From NCBI GenBank assembly GCA_009859145.1, contig VRVR01000058.1, positions 1 to 16,892 on the forward strand: DNA of 16,892 nucleotides, in the 5' to 3' direction. This DNA is from Andalucia godoyi And28. Taxonomy: Eukaryota > Protista > Jakobida. The stretch's first letter is position 1; each line of letters opens with the position of its first letter. Below are positions 1 to 16,892 of this stretch, in pieces. A model generated the notes under the pieces. The model was not told the origin of the DNA, searched no databases, and worked only from the letters and a program-made list of their open reading frames with translations. Made by a program: the position numbers and the translations under genes.

Positions 1-255
1 AGCACCTCGGACCGGTCTGCAGTTCACCATTCGCCGCCTGTCAAATTGGGTCATCTCGTCTGCAAGTTGTTGTCCTGGCAGCTTGTTTTCGAGCGAGTGC
101 GGCTTGCGTATCGAACTGGTCAGACAGTGCATGACAACATGTTCCAGTTGGGTGACGAAATGGAATCCCGCTTGCTCACATGGAGGATGCTTGTTTTGCT
201 ACAGGTCCGAGCCGGAGGTGGAGCAGACAGACATGTTTCACCGGAACGGTTTCTG

Positions 256-596
256 CTGCTTCGTGTATCAACGTTGAACATCAAAGCAATACGACGCTCT
301 TACCGTAGTCAAGTCCACCAGTCTTCACGTTGTTTTCCTCTTTCTATTATTTTCTATGTGTTTTGTCTTTTATCATCGAACCCTCAAGCAGCACCTCCTC
401 ATCAAAGACCGAACGTCTCGTGGCTCCAAAGAGGGATCTTCTCAACAAACTCAAAACGGCCATGCCCGACGATGCCGAGAACCATGAAACCCATTGATTC
501 CCTCTCAGCAAGAAGAAGCGATGACCCTTTGGTGCAGAGCAATCTGCATTGTGGCTTGGATCTGTCTTCGGTGATTGCTTAGCCAATGTTCAATAA
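256..596. repeat. Direct repeat copy A (~341 bp; partner at 3481-3828)
   Basis: 256-461 aligns to 3481-3687 with 6 substitutions and 1 indel. Beyond that only blocks match (GCGATGACCCTTTG, CAGAGC, TGGATCTGTCTTCGGTGA, CTTAGCC, TCAATAA), separated by non-matching spacers. Confidence 0.95.
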
Positions 597-805
597 AAAC
601 AGATTTTCCTGGTCTTGCGAGCTGCAGCAACAATTGTCTGACAGCCTGTGGTTCTCGAGCCTCAGTCTGTGACTCAGGGAGTCTGGCAAGGATTTGTTCA
701 AAAAATGCAAAAAGAAAGGGGGTGGAGGGAAAACCACATTAATTGAAACATTTCTCCACATCGGGGATACATAAATAATAATAATCGTACATCTCAAAAC
801 ATCCC

Positions 806-3367
806 TTACGCCATTGAGGCATACCGACGCTTGCGCAAGCGCAAGAAGACGAAGACTCCACAGCCACCAGCAATCAGAACAAAAGCGACAACAACAGGAA
901 CAACAATCGCCACAACTTTCTTTTTACCTTCCGAATCATCATCTGTGTGATTGGGAGGTACCGGTCCTGAGGGACACGAAACAGTGGAATAATCCTCGAG
1001 AACCCCGCCAAAGAAAACGGTGTTGTGTGGCGCGGCAACCGTGGTACGTATGTTGGGTCCGTCATGAATCCACTGTTCTGCAAAGGAATCTGGCACAAAT
1101 GAATATACTGACGAAACTCTTCGCCATAGTCCCGAGAGAACTCCGGATGTCGAAAATTCCAACTGACGGATCTGGCAGGTCGGGGAACAACCGAGGCTGC
1201 GAACCACGTCACTGAAATCTTGTGAGGTAGCATTGTACTCAACGACCGAAAATCCTGTCTTGACAGAGCCCGCGAAATAAAAGGCATTGGTAACCGAATC
1301 ATGGGCGGCAGCCTGACCGAAGTCGAATCCTGGCTGGAAGATCATCGTCCACGAAGATTGTTTTGTGTCAAACCAGGCCAACGGTACAACTTTGTCTTCA
1401 AGCTGGGCAGCAACCAAACTGCCAACAACATAAATCTTCGGATCGGAATCGGGTGCAAGAAGACCACTGTGTGCGACAGGATAATCCCCACCGATGTACG
1501 AAGGACCTCCAATAGGAAAGGAAACAGTGACCGTCGAGCCTTGCTGTCTAATAATCACGATGGGAGATCCGACATCCTCGCGGAAAAAGAATCCGGCAAG
1601 AACATACTCCGTCGCGTCTCCATCACATGAGCGACCAGTCATCGAACTGAGGTCAAAGAACGTCAAATTCTGAAAAGTTGTGAGAGGACTGATGAACTCA
1701 TTGGTCGCCCTGTGGAATTGCTTGAGCTCTCTTGCTTCACTGGAAACGATAGCAATGATTGAAGACCCCGGAACATGCGCAAGCCCCTCCACAGAACACT
1801 GACGACGATCTGCAGGTTGCGATGGGGCGAACAAAGTGTAGGAAGTGCCGGAAAGAGAAAGACCAAAGAAGCAACCCTCCAGCACTTGTTCTGAATTGGG
1901 AGCCGAAAGGTTGAGAGCAAAACGTGTGCCAAAGTAAACGGTATTAGGATCCACAACCACATAGTGGACATCGCTGATCGCATCCATTTCATAATGGCCA
2001 GTTCCTGTTGCAATCACCTCAACGGCATTCTCGCATTGCGTTCGTTGAATGTTCAACTGGTATTCAGAAATGCCGCTGACCAACGGAGATGTCATGGAAA
2101 TCGAGAGGAAGGCCTTTGATTTCGCTGGAGGGGGTGGGGCAGGAGGGGGACAAGACCTTGAAGTAGGATCGTTCAAAACACCGCCAAAGAACACGGCATT
2201 AACATTACTCTGCACAACAAAGCGGTCATCAACGCCATTGTCATAAACCCACTGTTCAGAGGACACGGTGTCTGGATCATAAGATAAGACTGAGGAGATT
2301 CTTCTCCACATGCCACTCATGTGGCCCGAACTCACAAACGTGATCTCGCGAACATTGCATTCAGGAGAGCACCCCAAGTCGACCGCAACATCTGTGACCG
2401 CTTTTGTGGAAGTGTCTAGCGTTCCAATTCTCCATCCCTTGTTGTATCCGCCGGCGACATACACTTCATTCGTTGCAGGATTATACCCAGCAGCACTACC
2501 CGGAAATATGGGAGCAGGAAGAATCACTGTCCACAGCTGCGTAAACGTGCTGAACCAGGCGACCGTCACGGGCACATACTCCGTCTCGTCCATCTGCAAA
2601 GCCCCGATAACATAAATGTTCGGATCATTAGGCGGTAGAACGACCCCGGTGGCAGCCACGGGCGTGGCTCCTCCTGCATAAGTGGGGCCATTGAGCGGAA
2701 ATACGACGTTTGTCAGCACTCCTGTTTGATTCACGATGACTATCGGGGACTGATGATCCTTCCAGTAAAAGCTCCCGCCCAGCACGTACTCGGTTCCGAA
2801 TCCATAGTCCTTGATTGCCAGAGCAGTCACATCAAACCCAAGAAAGTCATCGAATACGTCCAATGTGTCTCCAAACGTCTGGGTCTCAAGATGAAAAGGA
2901 ATCAAACCTCGAGTGTTGTCAAGGACGACAGTCAACACAGGCAAGGACGGCACATACGCCATGGAGGCAATCGTGCACGTACTTGGATTACCTGGTTGCT
3001 CAGGAAGGAATACTTCATACGAAGCTCCACTCAAGCGGAGACCAAAGAAGCAGCCTTGCAACAAGGTTTCAGAATTCGGACCGCTGAAATTGAATGAAAA
3101 ACGAAATCCAAAGAAAATCGTGGACGCATCGATCACTGCATACGGAAACGCGTTCAGAGGATCAAATTCGAATGCTGATGTGGCAGTGGCAATGGTCTCG
3201 ACTACGTTTCCACAAGCACTTCGCTGCATGTTCAATCGATACTGATGCACCCCATCGATCTTGGTGCTTGTTGTGCGCTCCATCGACAAGAACACATAGT
3301 TGTCCAGCGCAAAACACAGGCTTCCAACCGAAAACAACACAAGAAGTAGCAATGCGGAGAAGCGCAT
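806..3367 (-). CDS. Uncharacterised type I membrane glycoprotein (~853 aa) with two tandem homologous beta-rich ectodomain repeats
   Basis: Uninterrupted ORF. ATG at 3367 (aa 60 of the ORF-track protein) begins a signal peptide, MRFSALLLLVLFSVGSLCFA. Two halves (~3307-2148 and ~2117-971) share motifs (PNSExxLxGCFFGLxLSG, TEYVLxG, SPIVI, LGCSPxC, SGxWRRxSSV, FFGGVLxD..SCP) and are joined by a Pro linker (PPPAPPPPA). C-terminal TM VVAIVVPVVVAFVLIAGGCGVFVFL, basic stop-transfer RLRKRR, TAA stop. Confidence 0.85.
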   Translation of the reverse strand: MRFSALLLLVLFSVGSLCFALDNYVFLSMERTTSTKIDGVHQYRLNMQRSACGNVVETIATATSAFEFDPLNAFPYAVIDASTIFFGFRFSFNFSGPNSETLLQGCFFGLRLSGASYEVFLPEQPGNPSTCTIASMAYVPSLPVLTVVLDNTRGLIPFHLETQTFGDTLDVFDDFLGFDVTALAIKDYGFGTEYVLGGSFYWKDHQSPIVIVNQTGVLTNVVFPLNGPTYAGGATPVAATGVVLPPNDPNIYVIGALQMDETEYVPVTVAWFSTFTQLWTVILPAPIFPGSAAGYNPATNEVYVAGGYNKGWRIGTLDTSTKAVTDVAVDLGCSPECNVREITFVSSGHMSGMWRRISSVLSYDPDTVSSEQWVYDNGVDDRFVVQSNVNAVFFGGVLNDPTSRSCPPPAPPPPAKSKAFLSISMTSPLVSGISEYQLNIQRTQCENAVEVIATGTGHYEMDAISDVHYVVVDPNTVYFGTRFALNLSAPNSEQVLEGCFFGLSLSGTSYTLFAPSQPADRRQCSVEGLAHVPGSSIIAIVSSEARELKQFHRATNEFISPLTTFQNLTFFDLSSMTGRSCDGDATEYVLAGFFFREDVGSPIVIIRQQGSTVTVSFPIGGPSYIGGDYPVAHSGLLAPDSDPKIYVVGSLVAAQLEDKVVPLAWFDTKQSSWTMIFQPGFDFGQAAAHDSVTNAFYFAGSVKTGFSVVEYNATSQDFSDVVRSLGCSPTCQIRQLEFSTSGVLSGLWRRVSSVYSFVPDSFAEQWIHDGPNIRTTVAAPHNTVFFGGVLEDYSTVSCPSGPVPPNHTDDDSEGKKKVVAIVVPVVVAFVLIAGGCGVFVFLRLRKRRYASMA

Positions 3368-3480
3368 TTTTTTTTCAATTACCGAAGCGAAATACATGAA
3401 TTGGCAGGGGAAACCGTCGTTTAAAGAACAAATATAAGCTGAACGCTGATTATCATTATGATTATTGCTTTGACAGCTGA

Positions 3481-3828
3481 CTGCTTCGTGTATCAACGTT
3501 GAAACATCAAAGCAATACGACGCTCTTACCGTAGTCAAGTCCACCAGTCTTCACGTTGTTTTCCTCTTTCTATTATTTTCGATGTGTTTTGTCTTTTATC
3601 ATCGAATCCTCAAGCAGCACCTCCTCATCAAAGACCGAACGTCTCGTGGCTCCAAAGAGGGATCTTCCCGACAAACTCAAGCCGGCCACATTCTCTTCCC
3701 CCCAACGTTTACTTTTGAATGGTGAATCGACTGGGAAATATGCTGGTTGCGATGACCCTTTGATACAGAGCTGGTGCTCGCCCCAGACTGGATCTGTCTT
3801 CGGTGACACCTTAGCCGATGATCAATAA
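3481..3828. repeat. Direct repeat copy B (~348 bp; partner at 256-596)
   Basis: Direct alignment with 256-596: near-identical 5' ~207 bp, block-wise conservation in the 3' ~140 bp. Confidence 0.95.
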
Positions 3829-3892
3829 GGATTCATCTCTTTTGGCGAGCAGACGTGGAAGAGGAACCTCCCTTAGCTGTGCTGGAGAACCC

Positions 3893-3910
3893 TTTTTTTT
3901 TTTTTTTTTT
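3893..3910. repeat. T18 homopolymer in the intergenic region between divergent genes
   Basis: 18 consecutive T seen directly, lying between the starts of the 3367(-) and 4325(+) genes. Confidence 0.9.
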
Positions 3911-4324
3911 GGCTTCTGATTTGCCAGCTGTAAAATGCACTCCGCACTACGACTGCGAGTCACACGGCTGTTGCGCCCACAGCGGCAGCAACTGTAACAC
4001 AATTCCGGAAAAGGATAACAGAGTTTACAAAACCCAGAAACCTGAGATGGGGAACGAAAGTCCGGCTTGCCTTTTTCAGCTTTCTCGTCAATCAGACTGT
4101 GAAAACGCTCCTAGGAGTTGTGTGATGCGTATTCTCCAAAATGGGACGGAAACGACATCCAACGCATCAACTCGGGTACATAGAAGCAGAAATTCCCGAC
4201 GACGATTGCAATCCACTTCAGTCGTTTTCAAATGATGATTCCATTATTCTTCTACGGGCAGATTAAATCGTATTTATTTTCCAAAGCAGAGGATTTGTTT
4301 CCGTGTTCTCCGCTATGAAGTGAT

Positions 4325-7300
4325 ATGCATATTCTACAGTGTGCATTATATTCCATAGTTCTGTGTCTCCCAGTTGTGCTGGGTGCTTGTCCTTCGAACG
4401 TCGCCAACTGCACCCAGTGCATCTCGTTGGTACAGTCTGGAGACTGCAACAAGTTTTGTTATACAGCTTCAGACCCGACAGTATGTTCTCTTTTAATCGC
4501 GAAAAAAAGCTTTCTCACAGCACTGCATTCATGCAATGTATCATTCCCTCTAATGTTTTGTCAATTCATGATTGTAGAGTTCGAGATGCAAAACGGGAGC
4601 TTGTGGAAATCTGGGCGATCTGCAAGTAATATCACTATCGCATTGTGCCCTTCTTGGTATGATTATCCTTTGTGAATGCATTTTTGATTCTACTACCTTG
4701 CTGACATTTCGACATTCTTCCTCTCAATCAAATAGATTCCGGATACTTCTGTGAGCAGACATGCAATCTGACATATGGGAGTTGCGTAAACGGCGCTTGT
4801 GTTTGCTCCAATTCGCTATGGACGGGACCCAGCTGCACGAACTGCACTCAGAATCGAGTGAATTTTCCAACTTGTCAAACATGCAACTGCTCAAACGCGG
4901 GTAATTGCACAGGACCGGCATTTGGATGCGTTTGTAACACCGGGTACAATGGATCGAGCTGTCAAAACTGCTCTGCGAAATACTACGGACCCAGTTGCTC
5001 TGCGTGTTCCTGTCCAGTCGGCTCGTCATGTTTTGACGGTAAGAGTGGAAATGGAAGTTGCTTCTGTGCCAATTCATCATACTCTCCGAATTCCGGGTGT
5101 ACAGACTGCACGTCTTCCCGGTACGGGACAAACTGCTCTCTTGCATGTCCTTCCTGTCCTGTCGAATCTCCATGTGATTCTGGAAGCAATGGTACAGGAC
5201 GGTGCAAGTGCCCGGACGGCACGTCGTTTGCCGCAACCACCTGTCAGAATTGCAGTGCAGGCACCTACTCCAATGCGTCAACTGTGTATCAATGCCTTGC
5301 TTGCCCGGCTGGACAAGAAACCTCTCTGCCGTTCAAGAATTCCTGCGTTCTGTGCAAAGCTGGGTTCTACCGAAACGCCACAAGCGGTCCGGCTTGCACA
5401 GAGTGCCAGGTAGGACATGAATCTTCTCCTGGAAACACTGGCTGCAGGAGTTGCTACCCAAATCGCTTCGCTAACGCTTCGACAAATTCCCAGTGTACAG
5501 ACTGTCCAGCGGGGATGCAACCTACTGAATTCTACAATTCATGCCGCTCGTGTGATTCCGGAAAATTCTCTAATTCTTCTACAAACTTTCTTTGCACGGT
5601 CTGTTCTCCCGGCACGCAGCCAAGCATGGAGTCATCACAGTGCATGCAGTGTGCGAATGGACAGTACAGCAATTCGAGCACAGGTCACTTATGCTTGCAG
5701 TGTCCGCTCGGTCATATGTCCACCGCGACATATAATGCTTGCACAGCGTGTCTGCCTGGCACGTTCTCCAACTCGAGCGTGGACTACGCGTGCACACAAT
5801 GCTCGGCAGGGTCTCAGCCTACAGCGAACAGCAATGCATGCACATCGTGCGAAATTGGTCGCTACTCGAACGCTACGACTGGCTACATGTGCGTTTTCTG
5901 CGCACCTGGCTCGCAGTCGGCTGCTGACCATTCGCAGTGTCTGCAATGTCCGAGTGGATTCTACAGCAATGCGAGCTCGTCCTTTGTTTGCGTGTCCTGT
6001 GCGCCAGGAGAAGAGTCGTCTGCCTCGCGCGACAGCTGCAGAGCGTGCAGTGCATGGCAGATATCCAGCAATGTTTCGGATTTCATGTGCGCGACCTGTC
6101 CTTCTGGGACTCAGCCGTCTTCGGATCGCGATCGCTGCGTTGCTTGTGGCCTCGGACAGTATTCCAATTCGTCCACGTCAAATTTGTGTTCCGTTTGCCC
6201 CGATGGCAGCCAGCCAGCAGCTGGAAGCGGGTCTTGCGAGGGCTGTAGTGGTGGTCGCATTTCCAATGCTCTCACCGCGCACGTGTGTGTTTCATGCGCT
6301 CCTGGAACAGAGGGTAGCGTGGATGGCACGCAATGTGTCACGTGTCTGGAAGGGTACTATTCTAATTCGTCGTCCAACTTCCATTGCGAATTATGCCCTT
6401 CGCCGTTAGTGTCTTCTGACGACAAAAGCCATTGTCGCGCGTGTGCGTCCGGAATGTACGCAAATTCCTCGACCTCTTTTTTGTGCACTTTCTGTCCTGC
6501 TGGCTCTCAACCGGATGCGTCCTACTCATCATGCGAGGTCTGCACAGCGTCTGCATACTCGAATCTTGCTACCAACATAACATGTGAGAACTGCGCCTCT
6601 GGGACTGTCCCCACCCTTGACCACACCTCCTGTGTCAACTGTGGAGTGAATCAGTATTCGAATTCCAGCACGAACGGAAACTGCATATCTTGTCCAGTGA
6701 ACACCCAGTTGGCGCTGGATCTGGCCGGTTGCGACGCATGTGCTCCTGGAGAGTTTGTCAACAGTACAACAAACTTTTTGTGCACTGCGTGCCCCGACGG
6801 AACAGGACCGTCTCCCGATGGGCTGCAGTGCGTCCCTTGTTCTCTCGGGAAGTATTCCAACTCCACTTACCCAGGTGTTTGTCAAAATTGTCCTGAAGGA
6901 CACCAACCAAATCAGTTTCATGTGAACTGCTCTGTCTGCCGAGACAATGCATTTTCGAATTCATCGACGGATTTTGCATGTGTGGAATGTCCTGATGGAT
7001 CGATCCCAGTGAACGGCCACTCGCGTTGCGCAGACTGTCCTGCGAATCATTTCTCGAATTCCAGCACGAACGGAAACTGCGTAGCGTGCCCCTCCGCCTC
7101 TCAGTTGACGCCTTCACGCAATTCTTGTATGACCTGCCGGACTGGTCAATATGTCAATGAATCTACAGGGTACAGTTGCGTTGACTGCTCTGCCGGCGAA
7201 CAACCATCGCTCAATGCCTCCTACTGCGAATCCTGCCCTTCCAACATGTATTCGAACTCTTCAACGGCTTTTGCATGCAGCACGTGCCTCGAAGGCTACG

Positions 7301-10300
7301 AACCACATAGTTCCCAATCCCTCTGTTTGAGATGCTCCGGAAGCGAATACTCAAATGTATCCACCAATTCCTTGTGTTCTCCGTGCCCTGACGGTACAGT
7401 TCCCACTCAATTTCGGAACGAGTGCATCTCCTGTTCATTGAATTCATACTCTAGCGCAGTTACATTTGGTATCTGTGTTCCATGCCCTGCCAAGTTCCAG
7501 GTTGCAGCAAACCGTTCCGCTTGTGAAATGTGTTCAACTGGACATTATGTGAACGAATCTACTGCGTACAAGTGCCAACTTTGCGCTCCAGGAACAGAAC
7601 CCTCATCTGACGCATCCAACTGCTCTGCTTGTTCTGCCAACATGTACTCCAATGCCTCAACGACATTCGTTTGTGAATACTGCACCTCAGGATTCGAAGC
7701 CGCATTCGGCCGTTCAGCCTGCGAGAAATGTCCATTGAATTCGTTTTCGAACGCATCGACAGCATTCACCTGCAAATTTTGCGATAATGGAACTGTTCCT
7801 GTTGAAGGGCAAACCAGATGCGAACGTTGCCTGGTGAATTACTTTTCCAACTCGAATACCAATGGGACCTGCCTCCCGTGCCCCTCGGGTTACGAAACCT
7901 CGTCTGACCAAGGCATGTGCAGTGAGTGCGATACAGAACAGTATGCGAATGCATCTACGAACTATCGATGCACATTTTGCCTGCCGGGGTACTCGTCAAC
8001 TGCAAACAGGAGCACGTGTACAGAATGCGAAATTGGTCGCTACTCGAACGCTACGACTGGCTACATGTGCGTTTTCTGCGCACCTGGCTCGCAGTCGGCT
8101 GCTGACCATTCGCAGTGTCTGCAATGTCCGAGTGGATTCTACAGCAATGCGAGCTCGTCCTTTGTTTGCGTGTCCTGTGCGCCAGGAGAAGAGTCGTCTG
8201 CCTCGCGCGACAGCTGCAGAGCGTGCAGTGCATGGCAGATATCCAGCAATGTTTCGGATTTCATGTGCGCGACCTGTCCTTCTGGGACTCAGCCGTCTTC
8301 GGATCGCGATCGCTGCGTTGCTTGTGGCCTCGGACAGTATTCCAATTCGTCCACGTCAAATTTGTGTTCCGTTTGCCCCGATGGCAGCCAACCAGCAGCT
8401 GGAAGCGGGTCTTGCGAGGGCTGCGGCAACGGGACGTACGCAAACGCATCCTCTAATGGAATATGCACAGCATGTCCTGCTGGAAGCGTTCCAAATTCCA
8501 ATCGGTCTGGATGCAGAATGTGCGGTTCTTTGGAGTTTTCATTCGAAGACTCCTGTCTTTCATGCCCTGGCGGTTTTGAGATAAATTCTACTCGAACCGG
8601 ATGTCAGCAGTGTTCGCACAACACTTTCAGTAACCTGACACATCCGTTTTGCACATTTTGCGAAGCCGGCCAAGAGTCTTCACGAACAGGATGCATTGCG
8701 TGTGCAAATCGTCTGTTTTCAAACTCATCCACTAACTTTACGTGTCAGGAATGTCCACCGAACCAGTTGCCAACACAGGACTCTGCCTCTTGCGTGATGT
8801 GTCCTGCAGGATCTGTGGTGGATGACCAGTCTACCAGTTGCTCTACTTGTCAAGCTGGTACGGCACCGTTTTTCAATTTATCATTGGGGAAAAGCGTATG
8901 CTTAACTTGTGCAGCGGGATCGTTTTCGAATGGCAGCGCTTGCATGCCTTGTGAAGACGGTACTACACATTCTCCGTCTCACGCAGACTGTATCCCATGC
9001 GATGCTGCTAGATACTCAAATGCGTCTACAAGCCACCTGTGTAATGTGTGTCCGGATGGACATCAGGCGAGCCGACTGCAAGACCGATGTATCCGATGTC
9101 CCGCACATCAGTATGCTACCGCATCCACGGGTCACGTGTGTTCCGCTTGTCCGGCGGGAATGTCAGCACATGCACTGCAGTCATCGTGTGAACACTGTGC
9201 CGACGGTCGGTTTTCCAATCTTACTACAAATTTTACATGCGTCCCTTGCGCTTCCTCTGAATGGTCTGACGGATATTCCGGTCGTAACTCTTGTTTCGTC
9301 TGTCCCTCCATGTTTGTTACCAATGTTTCTACTGGACAATGCTCACCTTGTCCAGATGGGCAACAGCGTGACACGGCAAGTACGTGTCGGCCGTGTCCAT
9401 TGGGCTTGTTCGCCAGCGCTGCTTCCCGCTATCAATGCGCATACTGCAACCCCGGTTCACAACCCGACGATTCTCGTTCAGTCTGCAATCCTTGCGAACT
9501 CCCGCTGGTGTCGTATCCGCCGACGGTTGCACAGTGCACAAACTGCAGTCCTGGACAGGGTCCTCGATCAGACCAGTCGGGATGCGTTCCTTGCGCATCA
9601 GGTTTCTACTCGAATGCATCGACCAGCTTCGATTGCGTGAGGTGTCCTCCTGGAACAGAACCGTCCCGTTTGAAAGATCGATGCCAACCATGTTCAGTGT
9701 CGAGCTTCTCTAATGGATCAATATGCGATCCCTGTCCAGCTGGATTCACAACATCTGGAACAGGTGCTGCTTCCTGTGACGCCTGCGCAGCAGGATTTTT
9801 CGGACCTCTGTGCACCGCGTGCCCCCCTTGTTTCGAGGCGGCATTCTGCGATCAGGGCAGCGCTGGCACTGGACTTTGCGTTTGTCCTGAAAACCGTAGT
9901 GGTATTTGGTGCGAAACCTGCGCCGCAGGCTATTTCCCTGCGAGCGTTTGCAATGTGCACTGCACATCGAATGAAACGTGCTCAGGACATGGTCACTGTT
10001 CCAGTCGAGGCTATTGCATTTGCGAGGCTGGATTCAAAGGCAGCTCGTGCTCCGATCGCACAGTGGCTCCGGGATCCCCTGCTCTGCCGGTCGTCGGTTC
10101 TGGTGGGGAGACAGTCATGAAATCCACAGTTGCTGCGAGTGCTGTTTCCAGCCCCGGTTTTCTGCAACTGTTTGACAGTCTCCAGACGATAATGCGATTC
10201 TCATGCATGAGGATCGCGTATCCAATGTGGTACTTGGAGTTTGTCCAGTCCTTTTCTTTTGTGATGCTGGGCTTTCGAACTCCGCTGTACAGCATCGTGG

Positions 10301-12243
10301 ACAGCACTGAATTTTTCGAGGCTGAGGATGCGCACACAGATTCGAATTCGCCAAATCTTGAGATTCTTGTTGTCTCATCAACCGGGACCCTCAACGGACT
10401 CCTCATTGTTACGCTGTCATCCGTGTTGTTCATGCTGTTCGTGTTGTTGTGCTTGCACTTCTTTTCTTTCGGTCTTGCGTTTTCCATCATTGTTGCTCGG
10501 TATGTTCGACACTGTCGTTCAACAGGAAGGTCGTTGCACCTTTCTGATGTCTGCCGTCTTGTTAACTTCTCCAAACTTGCCCGGTTTTTCGATTCTCTCT
10601 ACTTTACTGTTTTCTACGCAGCAGCGTACCCGATATTTGTTGCGATTTCTCTGACATTCTTCGTTGCACAGTCTGCCAGCATGCTCATTCTTGCGTTGGT
10701 TGCCGCGACAGTCTACGTGCTTGTTGTGCTCCTTGCTATTGCTCCCTCTCTCAAACGCGGTCCAAGCATCAAAACGAAGCTGGATATCGCTTTCCACGTC
10801 TATCCGAAAGACTTGTGGTTTGTGCACGTACTCAACATTTCCATCTTCATCTTCGACGGCGTAATCGTTGCGGTTGGATCTCAGGCCGGCATGATGACAT
10901 CTTCGTTGCAAATTTGTTTGCTTGCGGGTCCTTCCTTCTTGAGACTTTTGCTTGCATTGGTTTTCATCCCTGCGGAAATGATGAAGGACAAAGCCTTGGG
11001 CATATTGAACGGTATTCTGGACGTTGTCCAGCTGCTGCTTGTGTTTGCTTTGGTGGGGAAAAGTAGATCTTCGTATTTGACAAACACCCTGATGACGTAT
11101 GTCGCATGGGCCCAGATGGTTGTTGTTATCATCAATATTTGTGTATCCGTATTCGAAATGGTCCTCGCGGTCGGCAGATTTCTAAAACACATGAGCCTTC
11201 TGGTTTCCGCTCGTATCCAGCGGGTTGGGAGCGATACGACGCAGAAGGATTTCAAGGACAAAATAGATGCGTGCCCAGCAGATCCAAAGACAGTCGCCGA
11301 ATGGACAAGCAATGACAGCAAATTCCTTCTACGCACAGGTCCAATCTGTGATCTTGATTCGGTCTCGGAAACAGACAGCGTTTCGTTTCCAGGGACATCT
11401 TACTCCAGTTCCGAACACGAGGGCAGTGCGTCTTGTCGCTCTCGCGCAATATCCAGTGCATCTTCGGCGGACCTCCATTCTGCTCCGGTGACACCTTCAA
11501 CCACTTCGAATCCTCTTGCGTTGAAATTCGATCTCACTCTGCGTCAGGACAGTGCAGTCGACCGCAACTATCAGCGGTCTCTTGTAAGCTTGCGCGATCC
11601 CCCCGATGATCAGTGCACAATCGACGCATTCGGTAATCCTGTTCCATACCATTCTCCCTTCTCTTCCAGCGCAGTGGAAATCGCACTGAGGACCACATCG
11701 GTCAAGAAAACAAAACCTGTGATCCTGCTGGATGCGAATGATCCAGAGAACAAGAACCCGCTGTGTCTCGCTTTTTCACAGCCCCCGCGACCGTCTGCTC
11801 GTCAGGCGCTGGTTCCAATTGGAATGCGAGCACTAAAGCGCAGTATTTCTCCGCAATCGGCAGCCCCCGAATTGCGAGACGGAGGAGCGAGTTCGTCGAT
11901 CAGCCCTCGAAAGGTCGCTGCTTCAGATCTCCCGTCTGAAGCATTTGCAACACCCAATCTTCACATCCATGCCCCCAGAAATCCCGTCTGTGTTCCCGAG
12001 GACTTTGCTCCGCCAACTCTTTCTTCTGCAACTTCTTCCTGGACGCTTCCGAACATCTCTGTGGAGTCTGCTGGACACTCAAACACTAACCCTCTTGCGA
12101 AGCCATTCGCCGATCGCTGGCCTTTTCCAAGTTCTGCAAATGTTTCAAGTTCCCGTCCGGGACTTACGTCTGTCGTTCCGAAGTACTCTATGGATCATCC
12201 TTTTCCTCTTCGTCGGTCATCTGGGAAATCGAAACAAGCATGA
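4325..12243 (+). CDS. Giant cysteine-rich multi-pass surface/receptor-like protein (signal peptide, EGF/laminin-EGF-like modules, GCC2_GCC3/furin-like-type Cys repeats, ~7-8 TM domain, Ser/Pro-rich tail); spliced, ~2580-2599 aa
   Basis: Model: join(4325..4480 or ..4537, 4578..4656, 4736..12243); the phases add up (0, then 1). ATG 4325 gives signal peptide MHILQCALYSIVLCLPVVLGA. The reading frame of ORF 4858 extends upstream to 4736 as (D)SGYFCEQTCNLTYGSCVNGACVC, an EGF-like pattern. Hydrophobic helices ~10150-11180; low-complexity S/P tail to TGA at 12243. Confidence 0.88.
4481..4577 (+). other. Spliceosomal intron 1 of the Cys-rich gene (donor 4481 GTATGT, or alternative in-frame donor 4538 GTATCA; acceptor TTGTAG at 4577)
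   Basis: Both donors are phase 0 relative to ATG 4325. Acceptor 4577 opens SSRCKTGACGNLGDLQ. An intron is required because the unspliced frame stops at 4675. Confidence 0.6.
4657..4735 (+). other. Spliceosomal intron 2 of the Cys-rich gene (79 nt)
   Basis: GTATGA donor, CTGAC branch-point match at 4701-4705, pyrimidine tract, AATAG acceptor. The phase-1 junction G|AT gives Asp and joins into the main ORF frame. Confidence 0.75.
5848..6245 (+). repeat. Intragenic duplication copy 1 (398 bp, four 33-aa units)
   Basis: Line-by-line comparison with 8026-8423 shows one difference (CAG at 6211-6213 vs CAA, synonymous Gln). Confidence 0.97.
8026..8423 (+). repeat. Intragenic duplication copy 2 (398 bp)
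   Basis: 397/398 identical to 5848-6245; offset 2178 nt = 22 x 99. Confidence 0.97.
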
Positions 12244-12704
12244 CCGAGACTGAAGACGGAACGCTCTACTGCTTCACGCTATATTGGTGGTGCACAAAAC
12301 TCTCACAGATACGCAAGAGACAGTACGCATGCAGCACTCGGGCAGAACGATGGGAATGGCTTTTTGACGCCTCCGGCTCTCGCCTACATTACACACTGAA
12401 GATGCATATCGACGGATGGACATGCATATTCAATCTTGGATCCCGTTGTCGGGAAGGGGATAGGCCTCAACACGCCTCTCGGCGCTCTTCAGATAGATGC
12501 TCCGCGCTCCGTTCCAATCTCGATCAATCGGTGAGCCACTTTCTCAGCGTGACACGTTGCTCCTGAGAAGGGTGCATTTTGATTCTGACGGCCCTGTATC
12601 GAGCGGCGTAGGCGTAGGCGAATGCATCATCCCAGCGCACTCACGCCCCTATTTGAATAAAAAAGAGTGAAACCAAAAAACCAAACCAACGAATGATAGA
12701 ATAG

Positions 12705-12833
12705 ATGGCTACGGATGCTGCGCTAAAGAGCGTCGAGAATGCGGAGCCTGTGTCACCGGCTGAATTCTGGCCGAGCGTGTGTAAGCACGGATTCCCCTGT
12801 GAAACAAAACGTGCTGGTGTCGGTCAGGATTGA
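12705..12833 (+). other. Short ATG-initiated ORF (42 aa, MATDAALKSVENAEPVSPAEFWPSV...), possible uORF or first exon upstream of the PHTF-like gene
   Basis: ATG follows an A/C-rich tract and the ORF contains a strong GTAAGC donor at 12781. Coding status unproven. Confidence 0.3.
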
Positions 12834-13018
12834 CCGTGTCTGTTCATGTATTCTTCCGTATGCATGACAATGGCGTGTTACTATTCTTCAGCGGCACTAT
12901 TTCTCTGCCCTGCAAGCCTTTTTTTCTGCTGATCCTCCGTCGGCATCAAGACATCAGGACTGTTTTTTTTCTCATTCTGTTGATACTTCAATGGGTCAGT
13001 AACCTTTGGTCGGCTACA

Positions 13019-14815
13019 ATGAATAGTTTGTTACTTAGCGATGCGGAGTATGCACGCTCCCCAGAATCTAGTGATGTGGAAATGTCAGAACAACGACGTC
13101 GTCATTCTGTCGCAGCGGCGTCTGAGCCTCCTGTTCTGCAGTGCTCCGGCGCTGCTGCTGCACCTAATCCTGTTTCGATTGCGGATGCATACGTCTCATT
13201 TCACTTTGCCATATTCATCCGAGAGTTTCTATATCATTTTCTGATACCGTTCGCGATTCCTGTCATTTATTTCTTTGAAGGTTGGTACAGTTTGATGAAT
13301 CGGTTGTTTTGGATTTCGTCTCGAGTTCCTGCATCCGCAATCTTCTTCATTCAGCAGTTGACTTTCTTTGGCCTGCACATTGCTTACAATGTGCTCTACT
13401 TCTACAATACAACAGACAAGAAAACCGGAAGAGTTGAGTACTCTGAGTCCACCGTTTCATTCATTGAAGTTGTTATTGTGAATCTGTTGTATTTGATCCG
13501 AGTTGCAACAATTGCTTGCAAGTACGCCTACCAGCCGCGATCCTTTTGGAAGAGATTCAACTCGGGACTGCTGTCGTCAAACGATGTTGGAGATATGTTG
13601 CTTGCGGTTGGGTGGTTCCAGTTGCGACCGCAGCTGATGATCCGGCAATTGTATTTTACGGAAACGCGTACCGGGATTGACCTTTCTTCTTCGTACTTGG
13701 TATTTCGGTCCGACACCCAAAACCTGGCTGTTATATCTCAGGTGAGTCCGGAGCAGCAAGTTGCGATCGACAATGAACTCTTGCGGGTGCCATACGAGAA
13801 AAAACGGTTGCATGCACGAGAAGTTGCTTGGCTGTGTCTTGCAGCAGCAGCCTCTCGAGTTAATGTTTCTCGTATTCGTGTCGCAGCAATGACGGTTACC
13901 GTCATTCATTCTTTTTTGCCGTGCCTGTTTAGACTGATCACGTATGGGACGTTCTTTGGCGAAAATCGATTTGACATCTCCGTTGTGGTGATTGGGATCG
14001 TTCTTTCGCTGTTTTTCATGTATGTTGACGTGCTCTTCCTGGCATGTTCTGCCGTGGACATGTACCGCCGTGCAAAGAGTCTTGGGCATTTGACAACAGT
14101 GACGAATCACATTGCTCAAGATGCATCTCCAATGAACTGGAGAGTGTGGATCGCCATTCGCCGTATTCTGGTAGATTTCGGACGCCAGTATCTTTCGCGG
14201 CTCTGTTGGTTCCTGGGCATGTTCCTTGTATTTCTGTTCATTTTGCTTCTATACATGGTGATCACCCTCTACAATGCGACGGATCTTTCGCAGATTGATT
14301 CCATTGCAATTGGAATAGTCGCCTTTGACAGTCTTGTCTTTTCGATTTGCATGATGGTTGTCGTCGTGAACGGAGCATCTGCAAACCAAATGTGCATTGC
14401 GCACCAGTCCAAGCTACGAAGCATTCAGCTCGAGCTCGCAAGCGGCGGCGGAATCGACAATGAATTGCACCAACATGAAATAGAACCAGAACTGAGGAAA
14501 GCAGCAGGTTCTTTCAAGGACGTTTACACGCAACCGGGGGACCATGATAGCGCTGTCATATCAAGGAGCTCAGCATTCGGGTCCGCTGCAAAGCGAGATT
14601 TGGACCTTGAGTGCATTCGGGCGATTGAAGCTCTGTGCCAGGCTGTCGGTGCCGAGCAGGAGCTGAACCCCATTAGCATTCTCGGCATCCAGGCAGGCTA
14701 TCCTTTTGCGCAGTTCCTTATGACTGTGGTCGGAGGCATCTTTGCAGCTTCCATCCAGCAGTACATCCATCTCATCCGACAGGACAAATCGACTTCTACT
14801 GCAAAACAAGATTGA
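13019..14815 (+). CDS. Polytopic membrane protein (~598 aa), PHTF-like / 7TM ion channel (GR/OR-like) superfamily candidate
   Basis: ATG 13019 has A at -3, and the upstream in-frame region is T-rich and UTR/intron-like. About 7 hydrophobic helices plus an N-terminal hydrophobic segment, with a long loop between TM2 and TM3. Motifs FLACSAVDMYRRAKSLGHLT, NWRVWIAIRRILVDFGRQ and terminal NPISILGIQAG..FLMTVVGGIFAASIQ resemble the corresponding PHTF segments as I recall them. Confidence 0.85.
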   Translation: MNSLLLSDAEYARSPESSDVEMSEQRRRHSVAAASEPPVLQCSGAAAAPNPVSIADAYVSFHFAIFIREFLYHFLIPFAIPVIYFFEGWYSLMNRLFWISSRVPASAIFFIQQLTFFGLHIAYNVLYFYNTTDKKTGRVEYSESTVSFIEVVIVNLLYLIRVATIACKYAYQPRSFWKRFNSGLLSSNDVGDMLLAVGWFQLRPQLMIRQLYFTETRTGIDLSSSYLVFRSDTQNLAVISQVSPEQQVAIDNELLRVPYEKKRLHAREVAWLCLAAAASRVNVSRIRVAAMTVTVIHSFLPCLFRLITYGTFFGENRFDISVVVIGIVLSLFFMYVDVLFLACSAVDMYRRAKSLGHLTTVTNHIAQDASPMNWRVWIAIRRILVDFGRQYLSRLCWFLGMFLVFLFILLLYMVITLYNATDLSQIDSIAIGIVAFDSLVFSICMMVVVVNGASANQMCIAHQSKLRSIQLELASGGGIDNELHQHEIEPELRKAAGSFKDVYTQPGDHDSAVISRSSAFGSAAKRDLDLECIRAIEALCQAVGAEQELNPISILGIQAGYPFAQFLMTVVGGIFAASIQQYIHLIRQDKSTSTAKQD

Positions 14816-15321
14816 GGTCTGCGGCGGTTGTTGTTGTTGGTGGTTTATGTTCTATTTTTAATGTCATTGCTTCCGTACAGGCCCACTTGCAGTCGAAGTA
14901 CGTGTCTTTTCCTGCCTCGTACTCGATCATTTTCGTTCGTGGCTTGTGCAACTTGGTGGTTTTTGTCCCCACCCCCCTTGTAAATGTATCGTTTTGACTG
15001 GTGCCTTCCAATTTACTGTTTATACCGTGAGTTCGTTCGGTCCATTGAATGACATTCAGAGGCTGCGTGAGCGAACAACAATTGAAACACGTACACATGT
15101 TGTCCGTGAGAGCGTCCATTCGCCGGGTATTTATTATTATTTTTTTCAAGGACGTCTCGCGTTTTCCTCGCATGCGTCGTATTGCACGAGGTGCGCCCTA
15201 ATGTGCGTTTCTCATTTGCCTCTTTCGGCTTTTTGAGTCGCAGGTTCCTGGCTGATTTGGGAACGTTGATCGTCGACAAATGCAAACTTCGCAGCATTCT
15301 CTGGTGGTTATCGGGTTTCAC

Positions 15322-15364
15322 AGGAAGAAAAAAGAAAGAAAGAAAGGAAAGAAAGGAAAGAAAG
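15322..15364. repeat. 43-nt pure-purine (GAAA)n-like tract upstream of nirK
   Basis: AGGAAGAAAAAAGAAAGAAAGAAAGGAAAGAAAGGAAAGAAAG seen directly. It explains the spurious KKKERKKGKKGKK extension in the ORF track. Confidence 0.85.
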
Positions 15365-15399
15365 CGAGGATCGTTATTGAAACTTTGGGGAAGGGGAAA

Positions 15400-16605
15400 A
15401 TGCTTTTCAGAATTGGTCGACAGCGCATCCTTCAATGGACTTCTGGTGCTGTGGCGACGGCTGCCGCACTTGCTGCATACTCGTCTCGCCTGTCAGCAGC
15501 CCCATCATCTGCGGATGCCGAAAGCCATTCGCAGACGATCTTGCTTCCACAGCCTCTTCCGAAATCAACTGTTTATGCTCGTACTCTGAATGAAGTTACA
15601 GGACTTTATCATTGGTTCCATCACAATCGAGGTGACCAGGCACGAGATTTGACCCCTGTTGTGGATGCCGAAGTGACGTTCGCTCCGAATGTTCCAAAGC
15701 CAATCGCTCGACGATACCCTGCGCGTGTTCGTGCAACTCTGGAATCTGTTGTCCGTTCCATTTCGTTGACCCCTCTGTACTCTTATGACGCATGGACGTT
15801 TAATGGATCGGTTCCTGGTCCAATGATTCGTTGTCGGGTTGGCGATGTGTTGGAACTGACTCACAAGAACAGCGATGAAAACGCTATCGGGCACAACATC
15901 GATTGCCATGGTGTGTTTGGACCCGGTGGCGGCGCTCCGGTTACAAACTGTGAGGCTGGGGAATCCCGAACGGCATACTTCCGTCTGCTCCACCCAGGGC
16001 TGTTCGTTGTTCACTGTGCTGCTGCGCCAGTTGTGCAGCACATTGCAAATGGAATGTATGCAATGCTACTGGTTGAACCAGAACACGGGCTTCCTCATGT
16101 GGATCGTGAGTTTTATGTCATGCAGAGCGAGTTTTATGGTGAAGAAGAAGAGAAGGGTTCCCGAAAGCTAGAGTTTTCCTATCCTCGCTGCCTGGACGAG
16201 AACCCTTCTCAGGTTGTTTTCAACGGGAAAGAAGGAGCATTAACGACACAGCCGCTTGTTGCCGAAGAAGGAGAAACCATTCGATTGTTTGTTGGCAATG
16301 CGGGACCGAACTTGGTGTCCAGTTTCCATGTGATTGGAGCCATTTTTGACAAGGTGTATCGCGAAGGAGATTTGCTGAGCACTCCGGCAAGAGCTCTGCA
16401 AACTACGTTGGTTCCGGCGGGCGGGAGCGTCGTTGTGGAATTCAACGCGGCCGTTCCTGGAACTTACTCACTCGTGGACCACAGCATTGCGCGCATCGAT
16501 AAAGGGGCGATCGGATTTCTCAAAGTCCGAGGCTCACCGCGCAAGGATATTTATGACTCCAACGATCCGGCACAGCCGTGTGATGGCTGTAAGCTTCATA
16601 ACTGA
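15400..16605 (+). CDS. nirK: Copper-containing nitrite reductase (NO-forming), AniA/class II-like, with organellar presequence (~401 aa)
   Basis: Type-1 Cu ligands His(15892), Cys(16015), His(16039), Met(16054). Type-2 Cu His(15907), His(16012), His(16480). Catalytic Asp in HNIDxH and His in SSFHVIG(16327). Signature segments APNVPxPIxRxYPARV, WTFNGSVPGPMIR, EFYVMQSEFY, VVFNG, GNAGPNLVSSFHVIGxIFD, LVDHS. Confidence 0.96.
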   Translation: MLFRIGRQRILQWTSGAVATAAALAAYSSRLSAAPSSADAESHSQTILLPQPLPKSTVYARTLNEVTGLYHWFHHNRGDQARDLTPVVDAEVTFAPNVPKPIARRYPARVRATLESVVRSISLTPLYSYDAWTFNGSVPGPMIRCRVGDVLELTHKNSDENAIGHNIDCHGVFGPGGGAPVTNCEAGESRTAYFRLLHPGLFVVHCAAAPVVQHIANGMYAMLLVEPEHGLPHVDREFYVMQSEFYGEEEEKGSRKLEFSYPRCLDENPSQVVFNGKEGALTTQPLVAEEGETIRLFVGNAGPNLVSSFHVIGAIFDKVYREGDLLSTPARALQTTLVPAGGSVVVEFNAAVPGTYSLVDHSIARIDKGAIGFLKVRGSPRKDIYDSNDPAQPCDGCKLHN

Positions 16606-16892
16606 GCGAATCCTCTTTTTTTGAAACAAAGGAAGGACGATCCTGTGCAGCTCAACGAGTCGTAACGCAGAGAAAGTTGGATTCAAAATAGCGTAAAGAA
16701 CTCTCTTCTTCGTTTGCATCCTTGATAGTGACAGAACTTCTCCCCCGGAACGCTGGATCGTCATGGTACTGTATGCAACAGATGTTTCGGACGGGTCGGC
16801 AACGCTGGTTCTCTGGAATAGCAGCTAGCAGGCCAGCCTACATGTACATTCACGAGGCAACCGGACGACAGACATGCGTCGCACGCTTGCAC

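Follow-up and report, generated by a model that had tools for sequence, protein, structure and literature searches.

The first 16,892 nt of the 173-kb scaffold VRVR01000058.1 (assembly GCA_009859145.1), which we analysed in full and call the window, carry near their right-hand end nirK, a gene for a copper-containing nitrite reductase (NirK; EC 1.7.2.1) that forms nitric oxide (NO) (15400-16605, + strand, as are all features below unless noted). By exact protein-sequence look-up the window corresponds to bases 1-16892 of this scaffold, which belongs to VRVR00000000, the draft nuclear genome (Gray et al. 2020, PMC7050145) of Andalucia godoyi, a jakobid flagellate and soil protist. On the + strand, the reading frame stays open between 15280 and the TGA at 16603-16605. 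Read from the ATG at 15400, the coding sequence comprises 401 codons and the TGA with no intron, and its 401-residue product matches exactly that of the NCBI record, whose gene call on the scaffold is identical. Because the alignment to AniA of Neisseria gonorrhoeae is collinear over residues 85-385, with gaps of only 1-2 residues, the catalytic core has no intron.

Translation could also begin at an in-frame upstream ATG at 15280, giving 441 residues, and we rejected this start. Between it and the accepted start lies a purine-only (GAAA/GGAAA)n tract of 43 nt (15322-15364), presumed to belong to the 5′ leader, and the 40 codons upstream of 15400 are K/E-rich low-complexity sequence that derives from this tract and has no counterpart in homologues. 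The N-termini of the closest relatives, MSRRLRLL... and MFRKLW..., correspond to MLFRIGRQR... at 15400, where NCBI also begins its call. A short string upstream in A. godoyi, MQTSQHSLVV, looks like MQTESLVV in the relative P0001; since the latter stems from a GTG start that prokaryotic gene calling selected, we put the likeness down to chance or short leader similarity. Searches for tRNAs, Rfam families and bacterial promoters or terminators, in the window or around the gene, returned nothing relevant, and the promoter scan found no sigma-70-like promoter near nirK.

The domain content of the product is that of a NirK. Two Pfam models, PF07732 (Cu-oxidase_3) and PF07731 (Cu-oxidase_2), both score over their cut-offs, and the model TIGR02376 (‘copper-containing nitrite reductase’) matches the protein end to end (283.8 bits, E = 1.8e-84). 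The best match in the PDB is AniA (1kbv, E = 2.7e-94), with the core regions of three-domain NirKs from Ralstonia, Pseudoalteromonas and Hyphomicrobium coming next. Matches to AniA, RpNiR and PhNiR (E = 1e-94 to 1e-80, 44-50% identity) place the protein in class II, those to the class I enzymes AxNiR/AfNiR of Alcaligenes/Achromobacter being far weaker (E ~1e-37, 28-30% identity). The catalytic core of two cupredoxin domains spans residues 85-380 (15652-16539), and the chain ends 11-15 residues past it; no extra redox domain or CxxCH haem motif is found in the 401 residues.

Within the core, the residues that bind copper and carry out catalysis could all be located. The segment H165-N-I-D168-C-H170 (15892-15909) holds a type-1 copper (T1Cu) histidine, the catalytic aspartate and a type-2 copper (T2Cu) histidine, in that order. 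Further along lie H205 (T2Cu) and C206, H214 and M219 (T1Cu) (16012-16056), with the Cys-His bridge that connects the two coppers, and then the catalytic H310 and the substrate-pocket I312 (16327-16335), assigned by alignment to AniA. The third T2Cu ligand, H361 (16480-16482), would be supplied to the neighbouring subunit of a trimer, as the family leads one to expect. All ten positions (H165, C206, H214 and M219 of T1Cu; H170, H205 and H361 of T2Cu; D168 and H310; I312) are invariant in an alignment of 56 sequences, which covers eukaryotic and bacterial relatives. The same alignment underlies an AlphaFold2 monomer model, in which the predicted local distance difference test score (pLDDT) exceeds 95 across the core. 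In Foldseek comparisons this core superimposes on AniA (5ue6/1kbv) with template-modelling (TM) scores of 0.94-0.96 and a root-mean-square deviation of 1.7 Å, and the top 50 matches are all NirK, with TM scores to the target of up to 0.96. An earlier note on this DNA had described an intact, intronless nirK with all type-1 and type-2 copper ligands and both catalytic residues in place; the uninterrupted reading frame and the invariant residues bear it out, and what it observed in the sequence was right in every particular.

Inside the active-site segment, C169 (15904-15906), between D168 and H170, is replaced by Phe, Met or Leu in the relatives that we inspected.

Ahead of the core, the A. godoyi protein carries an extension of 94 aa. 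It opens with a presequence of residues 1-31 (MLFRIGRQRILQW + TSGAVATAAALAAY...; 15400-15492) that is basic and then Gly/Ala-rich and hydrophobic, with a predicted helix at 2-31 and with three basic and no acidic residues ahead of the hydrophobic segment. A poorly conserved linker follows (residues 36-81; 15505-15642), predicted to be disordered (pLDDT <50) and unalignable between homologues. This arrangement, a basic stretch, a hydrophobic segment and a spacer of ~55-70 residues, recurs in 32 eukaryote-type NirKs, in which the N-terminal extension has a median length of 98 aa, as against a 41-aa signal peptide in the bacterial relatives. Gray et al. (2020, PMC7050145) give a mean mitochondrial-targeting score of 82 (‘high’) for gene _04647 in their Table S4. 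A mitoproteome study of Acanthamoeba (2026) detected NirK in purified mitochondria by mass spectrometry, calling its function unknown; an intermembrane-space placement has been proposed in the literature for fungal and foraminiferal NirK, and Woehle et al. (2018) summarize a view in which the fungal enzyme acts in that compartment and is of endosymbiotic origin. We infer that the presequence is a bipartite signal for mitochondrial import and intermembrane-space sorting, or an inner-membrane anchor, and NirK probably acts in the mitochondria of A. godoyi, a location that is predicted from these features.

A presequence-like stretch also turns up at the locus of the environmental relative P0002 (L003 ~4700-5000, L004 ~1370-1670), where the NirK frame runs upstream into MFRKLWLPTATTLTVSLGAGLALNSY... 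with one in-frame TAA. Because the frame continues past this TAA, which may reflect a short intron or an error, the 338-aa call for P0002 is N-terminally truncated.

The opposite end of the protein bears a feature that seems to have gone undescribed. The C-terminal tail AQPC394DGC397KLH400N (16570-16602; motif residues C394 to H400 at 16579-16602) forms a Cys-x-x-Cys-x-x-His motif whose C394, C397 and H400 are at least 90% conserved in the 56-sequence alignment. C-x-x-C-x-x-H followed by 0-3 residues closes the chain in 119 of 121 sequences (the query and its 120 best matches). Eukaryote-type proteins end in C-x-x-C-K-[LIVM]-H-x and their nearest bacterial relatives in C-x-G-C-[LM]-[VI]-H-P; the former signature, to which A. 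godoyi NirK conforms, was derived in this analysis and is not a published criterion. In an exhaustive search of 1.84 billion cluster representatives, the ten best clusters and a handful of fragments carry the tail, after which the matches change abruptly to tail-less NirKs. Tail-bearing clusters include Aspergillus tamarii, Ophiocordyceps australis, Galdieria yellowstonensis and bdelloid rotifers (Rotaria), and chlorophyte, Naegleria and nematode NirKs carry the tail as well. Every eukaryotic NirK sampled bears it, in fungi, algae, amoeboflagellates, the jakobid, nematodes and rotifers. Among bacteria, we searched 185,579 GTDB species genomes with the bacterial L-type protein P0017 as query and kept the 80 best related loci. 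Seven of these have the tail, all of them in metagenome-assembled genomes (MAGs), assigned to Planctomycetales, Planctomycetia, Verrucomicrobiia, Elusimicrobia and, in three cases, Omnitrophota.

No PDB chain aligns past query residue ~390 to cover the tail, and the monomer model leaves its position unplaced (pLDDT 57-73). A haem-binding role, by analogy with the CxxCK motif of NrfA, was rejected: the bacterial counterparts read CxGCL, the protein offers no domain in which a haem could sit, and the motif departs from CxxCH. Copper insertion into AniA needs a PCuAC-type chaperone, which some NirK-bearing organisms lack, and for this reason a Cys2-His arm that captures Cu(I) is a reasonable guess. 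As far as such a guess can go, additional metal handling is the likeliest role of the tail, such as the capture of Cu(I) for self-metallation. We are doubtful of a broader proposal, in which a distinct NirK subclass would possess, in the tail, a third and so far undescribed element for metal binding or redox chemistry, for example a Cu(I) arm replacing a PCuAC/AccA-type chaperone, and its restricted bacterial distribution would mark a non-alphaproteobacterial source of eukaryotic NirK. We found no description of the motif in the literature searched; the key 2009 paper lay outside that search, and an earlier description is possible.

Among tail-less class II NirKs, histidine is frequently the very last residue, often as ...SGH. 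This applies to 25 of the 135 cluster representatives and, among 73 GTDB loci, to 33, against ~2% expected by chance. These proteins (L014-L086, P0131-P0271) include enzymes with an extra C-terminal cytochrome c domain, and a C-terminal histidine may be a wider feature of class II NirK, judging from these endings.

To place the enzyme among its relatives, we used neighbour-joining trees, that is, distance methods on a biased sample, midpoint-rooted or unrooted. A. godoyi NirK falls inside a eukaryote-type group that is split from the bacterial type with 100/100 bootstrap support and that includes Naegleria lovaniensis, Chlorella, Chlamydomonas, Edaphochlamys, nematodes and further sequences. 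Its sisters are P0001 and P0002 (bootstrap 61/100), environmental sequences with 59-64% identity to it. The P0002 gene lies between genes for an RRM protein and a BRCA2 homologue, and another member of the clade lies beside RCC1/SPRY genes. The A. godoyi locus shares no synteny with the loci of its closest relatives, nirK alone matching.

Eukaryotic-type NirKs with a presequence-like N-terminus and a CxxCK.H tail are also annotated in animals. In nematodes they are listed for Aphelenchoides avenae (P0046, 214-kb contig) and Ditylenchus destructor (P0062, 233-kb contig), and in bdelloid rotifers for the P0162 cluster of Rotaria spp., on contigs of up to 3.3 Mb. We found no paper on nematode NirK in the literature searched.

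The remainder of the window is occupied by other genes of A. godoyi. Immediately upstream of nirK lies a gene for a multi-pass membrane protein (12830-14815) without a Pfam match, whose family is A. godoyi-specific: among 5.8 billion proteins it has two matches, itself and the A. godoyi paralogue ANDGO_01682 (86% identity). Before it comes a giant gene for a Cys-rich, receptor-like protein with a C-terminal membrane region (4325-12243; PF07699, E = 8e-58; PF23091; PF07562). Its 2461-codon open reading frame (ORF) at 4858-12243 encodes ephrin-receptor-like (GCC2-GCC3), TNFR-like and EGF-like Cys-rich repeats, and only the removal of two short GT..AG introns of the spliceosomal type (4481-4577 and 4657-4735) restores a 2580-codon frame that begins with a signal peptide. 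The two introns are predicted from the sequence, and a two-intron model fits the genome as Gray et al. (2020, PMC7050145) describe it, compact, poor in introns and with GT..AG introns of 151 bp on average. On the - strand, the product of a context gene at 806-3544 is a type I membrane protein in which a unit of ~400 aa occurs twice and which gives a weak Kelch-like match.

Two direct repeats were seen among these neighbours. One of 186 nt (97% identical; 277-462 and 3503-3688) duplicates the 5′ end of the 806-3544 gene near the contig start, suggesting that a tandem paralogue is truncated there by the contig boundary. The other, of 300 nt (92%; 5791-6090 and 7969-8268), lies inside the giant receptor-like gene, where a block of ~135 residues occurs twice in almost identical form, indicating a recent internal duplication.

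Taking the locus as a whole, we consider it highly probable that nirK is a single-copy nuclear gene of A. godoyi encoding a class II (AniA-type) two-domain NirK that is probably mitochondrial. Several observations weigh against this reading. The TIGR02376 score falls 12.5 bits short of the NCBI equivalog cut-off (296.3 bits). The hydrophobic segment of the presequence is only moderate, with a maximum Kyte-Doolittle value of 1.2 over 15 residues. A 6,242-nt run of N (record 16893-23134; L001 11494-17735) begins 287 nt past the nirK stop. No P450(nor), qNor, nitric-oxide, flavodiiron, hybrid-cluster or globin entry appears in those supplementary tables of the genome paper that we covered, an incomplete set. 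Finally, the link between gene _04647 of Table S4 and the ORF at 15400-16605 is one that we infer, because _04647 is the sole K00368 entry and no second A. godoyi NirK occurs among the best 120 protein matches.

The TIGR02376 shortfall bears on the identity of the enzyme. Naegleria, Chlorella and one further relative score 269-285 bits with this model, a nematode homologue 302 and the nearest bacterial proteins 316-327. On these scores the shortfall is a property of the eukaryotic clade, measured against a threshold tuned on bacteria, and is not disqualifying. A multicopper oxidase with another activity, laccase-like or CueO-like, would explain a score slightly under the cut-off and the generic multicopper-oxidase domains that are all Pfam reports. 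However, other multicopper-oxidase models reach only 15-29 bits here, against 284 for NirK. The protein has two cupredoxin domains, not three, and lacks the His-x-His pairs of a trinuclear cluster. Its NirK-specific Asp/His/Ile catalytic set is invariant, and it shares 48-50% identity with enzymes that have been solved structurally in complex with nitrite or NO. An oxidase of this other kind is thus extremely improbable. The modest hydrophobicity of the presequence, for its part, concerns where the enzyme resides: NirK may be located in the matrix, or be present as a cleaved soluble form, instead of being sorted or anchored to the intermembrane space.

The run of N concerns the origin of the DNA itself. 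The window is a contiguous block left of a scaffold gap or masked stretch, and nirK sits at its extreme end. This position, the lack of introns in nirK, the growth of A. godoyi on bacteria and the bacterial source of the closest solved and many database relatives would all suit a contaminant or chimeric join, in which an assembly error would have attached the nirK of a prey bacterium, or of an associated one, to a contig of A. godoyi. Against this, the 16.9-kb window holds no N, and there is no composition step between nirK and its upstream neighbours, the adjacent one being A. godoyi-specific. The codon usage of nirK is indistinguishable from that of its neighbours: relative synonymous codon usage correlates with that of three large neighbour ORFs at r = 0.58-0.66 (0.38-0.69 among the neighbours themselves), and GC content at third codon positions is 0.47, compared with 0.50-0.52. 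Both ends of the protein are of the eukaryotic kind, the N-terminus being a 94-aa basic-plus-hydrophobic extension and not a signal peptide, and the tail reading C-x-x-C-K-L-H-N and not the bacterial C-x-G-C-L-V-H-P. The eukaryote/bacteria split at 100/100 bootstrap and the RRM and BRCA2 genes that flank the nearest relative, P0002, also argue against a bacterial source, as does the statement of Gray et al. (2020, PMC7050145) that they compared every gene model proposed as mitochondrial with RNA-seq. We regard a contaminant or chimera as very unlikely. The earlier note had likewise argued against a bacterial contaminant and had placed nirK in a protist-type nuclear genome, which agrees with the scaffold assignment, among eukaryotic genes of which one contains introns, which is supported by the predicted two-intron model and by the upstream gene whose sole other homologue is an A. 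godoyi paralogue. It had also named a linkage break near the gene as a refuting condition; the left side is contiguous, whereas the right side gives way to the run of N.

With nirK taken as an A. godoyi gene, the question of where eukaryotic NirK came from can be addressed. Published work favours an endosymbiotic origin, with the eukaryotic sequences clustering together. Our searches point elsewhere for the closest bacterial proteins. The seven tail-bearing MAG loci among the best 80 in GTDB are the closest to A. godoyi NirK (345-377 bits), and the remaining loci score at most 303 bits, the alphaproteobacteria Pseudolabrys, Devosia and Caulobacter among them at 276-303. These observations would fit a history in which eukaryotic NirK did not descend from the alphaproteobacterial ancestor of mitochondria, and was instead acquired laterally from, or shares an ancestor with, a Planctomycetes-Verrucomicrobia-Chlamydiae (PVC)/Omnitrophota/Elusimicrobia-type lineage, before it spread or was lost among eukaryotes. 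The confinement of the C-x-x-C-x-x-H tail to those Omnitrophota, Planctomycetes, Verrucomicrobiia and Elusimicrobia MAGs among the best 80 loci favours such a history, and the patchy presence of NirK in nematodes and bdelloid rotifers suggests lateral spread. The trees, however, are distance trees with the sampling and rooting given above, so that either direction of transfer fits, and the MAG taxonomy labels are taken at face value. We judge a lateral origin of this kind a serious contender, if one that falls a little short of an even chance.

How the enzyme would work can be outlined from its family. NirK would form a homotrimer with T2Cu at the subunit interfaces; T1Cu would take up one electron and pass it over the C206-H205 bridge to the interface T2Cu, where NO2- + 2H+ would be reduced to NO + H2O, with D168 and H310 delivering the protons. 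Judging from the N-terminal extension, the published targeting score (82) and the homologues of fungi and Acanthamoeba, the basic part of the presequence would direct the precursor into mitochondria. The hydrophobic segment would then sort the catalytic domain to, or anchor it at, the inner-membrane face that borders the intermembrane space, which topologically corresponds to the bacterial periplasm. Because no donor domain is fused to NirK, a separate, soluble electron donor is needed; the likely candidate at that site would be cytochrome c, reduced by complex III.

Candidates for the purpose of this reaction are hypoxic nitrite respiration, NO generation and nitrite detoxification, the first two of which the earlier note had suggested. 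A full denitrification pathway in A. godoyi has no support, because the supplementary tables covered list no NO reductase. The gene could be genuine and its product still non-respiratory, providing an NO signal or removing nitrite in transient hypoxia without energy conservation or a dedicated NO reductase. According to Gray et al. (2020, PMC7050145), the organism is fully aerobic and its oxidative phosphorylation is complete; the mitoproteome tables covered hold no NO reductase-like entry, the Acanthamoeba study of 2026 assigns its NirK no function, and partial pathways from NO2- to NO are said to be common in algae (Bellido-Pedraza et al. 2020). Yet a missing partner enzyme is weak evidence where the tables are incomplete and _04647 itself appears in one table only, and electron flow to NirK by way of complex III and cytochrome c would conserve energy irrespective of the fate of NO. 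We see a non-respiratory role as possible, though less likely than not.

The gene itself is already known. In Table S4 of Gray et al. (2020, PMC7050145), _04647 is listed as K00368, NO-forming nitrite reductase, and is paired with XP_004333377.1 of A. castellanii. Bellido-Pedraza et al. (2020, Table 2) list the A. godoyi NIRK as KAF0852161.1 and note NirK ‘in Excavata’. Pold et al. (2024) assign fungal NirK to clade 1g, with which protist and algal sequences cluster, those of Naegleria, Spumella, Galdieria and Emiliania among them, and Foraminifera NirK to a separate clade, 1b. The earlier note had left novelty to depend on the host lineage; with A. godoyi as host and its gene already annotated, novelty is low, and A. 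godoyi NirK is an ordinary member of an established eukaryotic mitochondrial group. A eukaryotic, mitochondrion-associated NirK clade was reportedly recognized by Kim and colleagues in 2009.

Finding the gene thus adds little in itself, eukaryotic mitochondrial NirKs being established though poorly understood. To our knowledge, the A. godoyi mitochondrial genome is the most bacterium-like known. A mitochondrion-targeted NirK in this organism would be a data point on nitrite reduction by the last eukaryotic common ancestor's mitochondrion, and would also inform the role of such enzymes in nominally aerobic protists. Only two leads go further than published knowledge, namely the tail motif and the finding that the nearest relatives are not alphaproteobacterial. 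If confirmed, the Cys2-His tail would suggest an unstudied step in the copper loading or regulation of NirK, and nearest bacterial relatives in PVC/Omnitrophota-type MAGs would bear directly on the hypothesis of a protomitochondrial origin.

Among the characterized enzymes, AniA (1kbv, 5ue6, 5tb7), the prototype of class II, shares 48-50% identity with A. godoyi NirK over 300 residues, a TM score of 0.95 and identical copper ligands and catalytic residues. Unlike A. godoyi NirK, AniA is a lipoprotein of the bacterial outer membrane, its N-terminus being of the signal/lipobox kind and its C-terminal region glycosylated; it has neither a mitochondrial-type presequence nor the Cys-x-x-Cys-x-x-His tail, and alignments to it stop at query residue 385. 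The three-domain NirKs of Ralstonia pickettii (3ziy), Pseudoalteromonas (2zoo) and Hyphomicrobium (2dv6) are equally similar in the core (~48% identity, E ~1e-91 to 1e-80) but carry a fused cytochrome c or cupredoxin, whereas A. godoyi NirK has no donor domain and ends 11 residues past the start of their linker.

The closest bacterial relatives found are the NirKs of the Omnitrophota, Planctomycetota, Verrucomicrobiota and Elusimicrobiota MAGs (for example P0017 and P0039; L007-L013), with 51-57% identity. They share the tail pattern but have Leu or Met where eukaryotes have Lys, and they carry a short signal peptide (median extension 41 aa) in place of the eukaryotic presequence of ~98 aa. 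The trees split them from the eukaryotic type at 100/100, and with TIGR02376 they score 316-327 bits, above the cut-off.

Of the eukaryotic enzymes, the NirK of Foraminifera (Globobulimina; clade 1b in Pold et al. 2024), for which action in the intermembrane space has also been proposed, stands apart from the fungal/protist clade, as an independent origin, in published trees; A. godoyi NirK, compared with it through those published trees, groups with the fungal/protist sequences. With that eukaryotic clade (Fusarium oxysporum, Aspergillus, Acanthamoeba castellanii, Naegleria, Chlamydomonas/Chlorella and Galdieria) it has in common the two-domain class II core and its catalytic residues, the long basic-then-hydrophobic N-terminal extension and the C-x-x-C-K-[LIVM]-H-x ending, at 52-64% identity to Naegleria, chlorophyte and further eukaryotic sequences. 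A. godoyi NirK is predicted to be mitochondrial, and the Acanthamoeba homologue is mitochondrial by mass spectrometry. The differences lie in the jakobid (Discoba) host and in Cys169, and nothing structural sets A. godoyi NirK apart from the rest of the clade.

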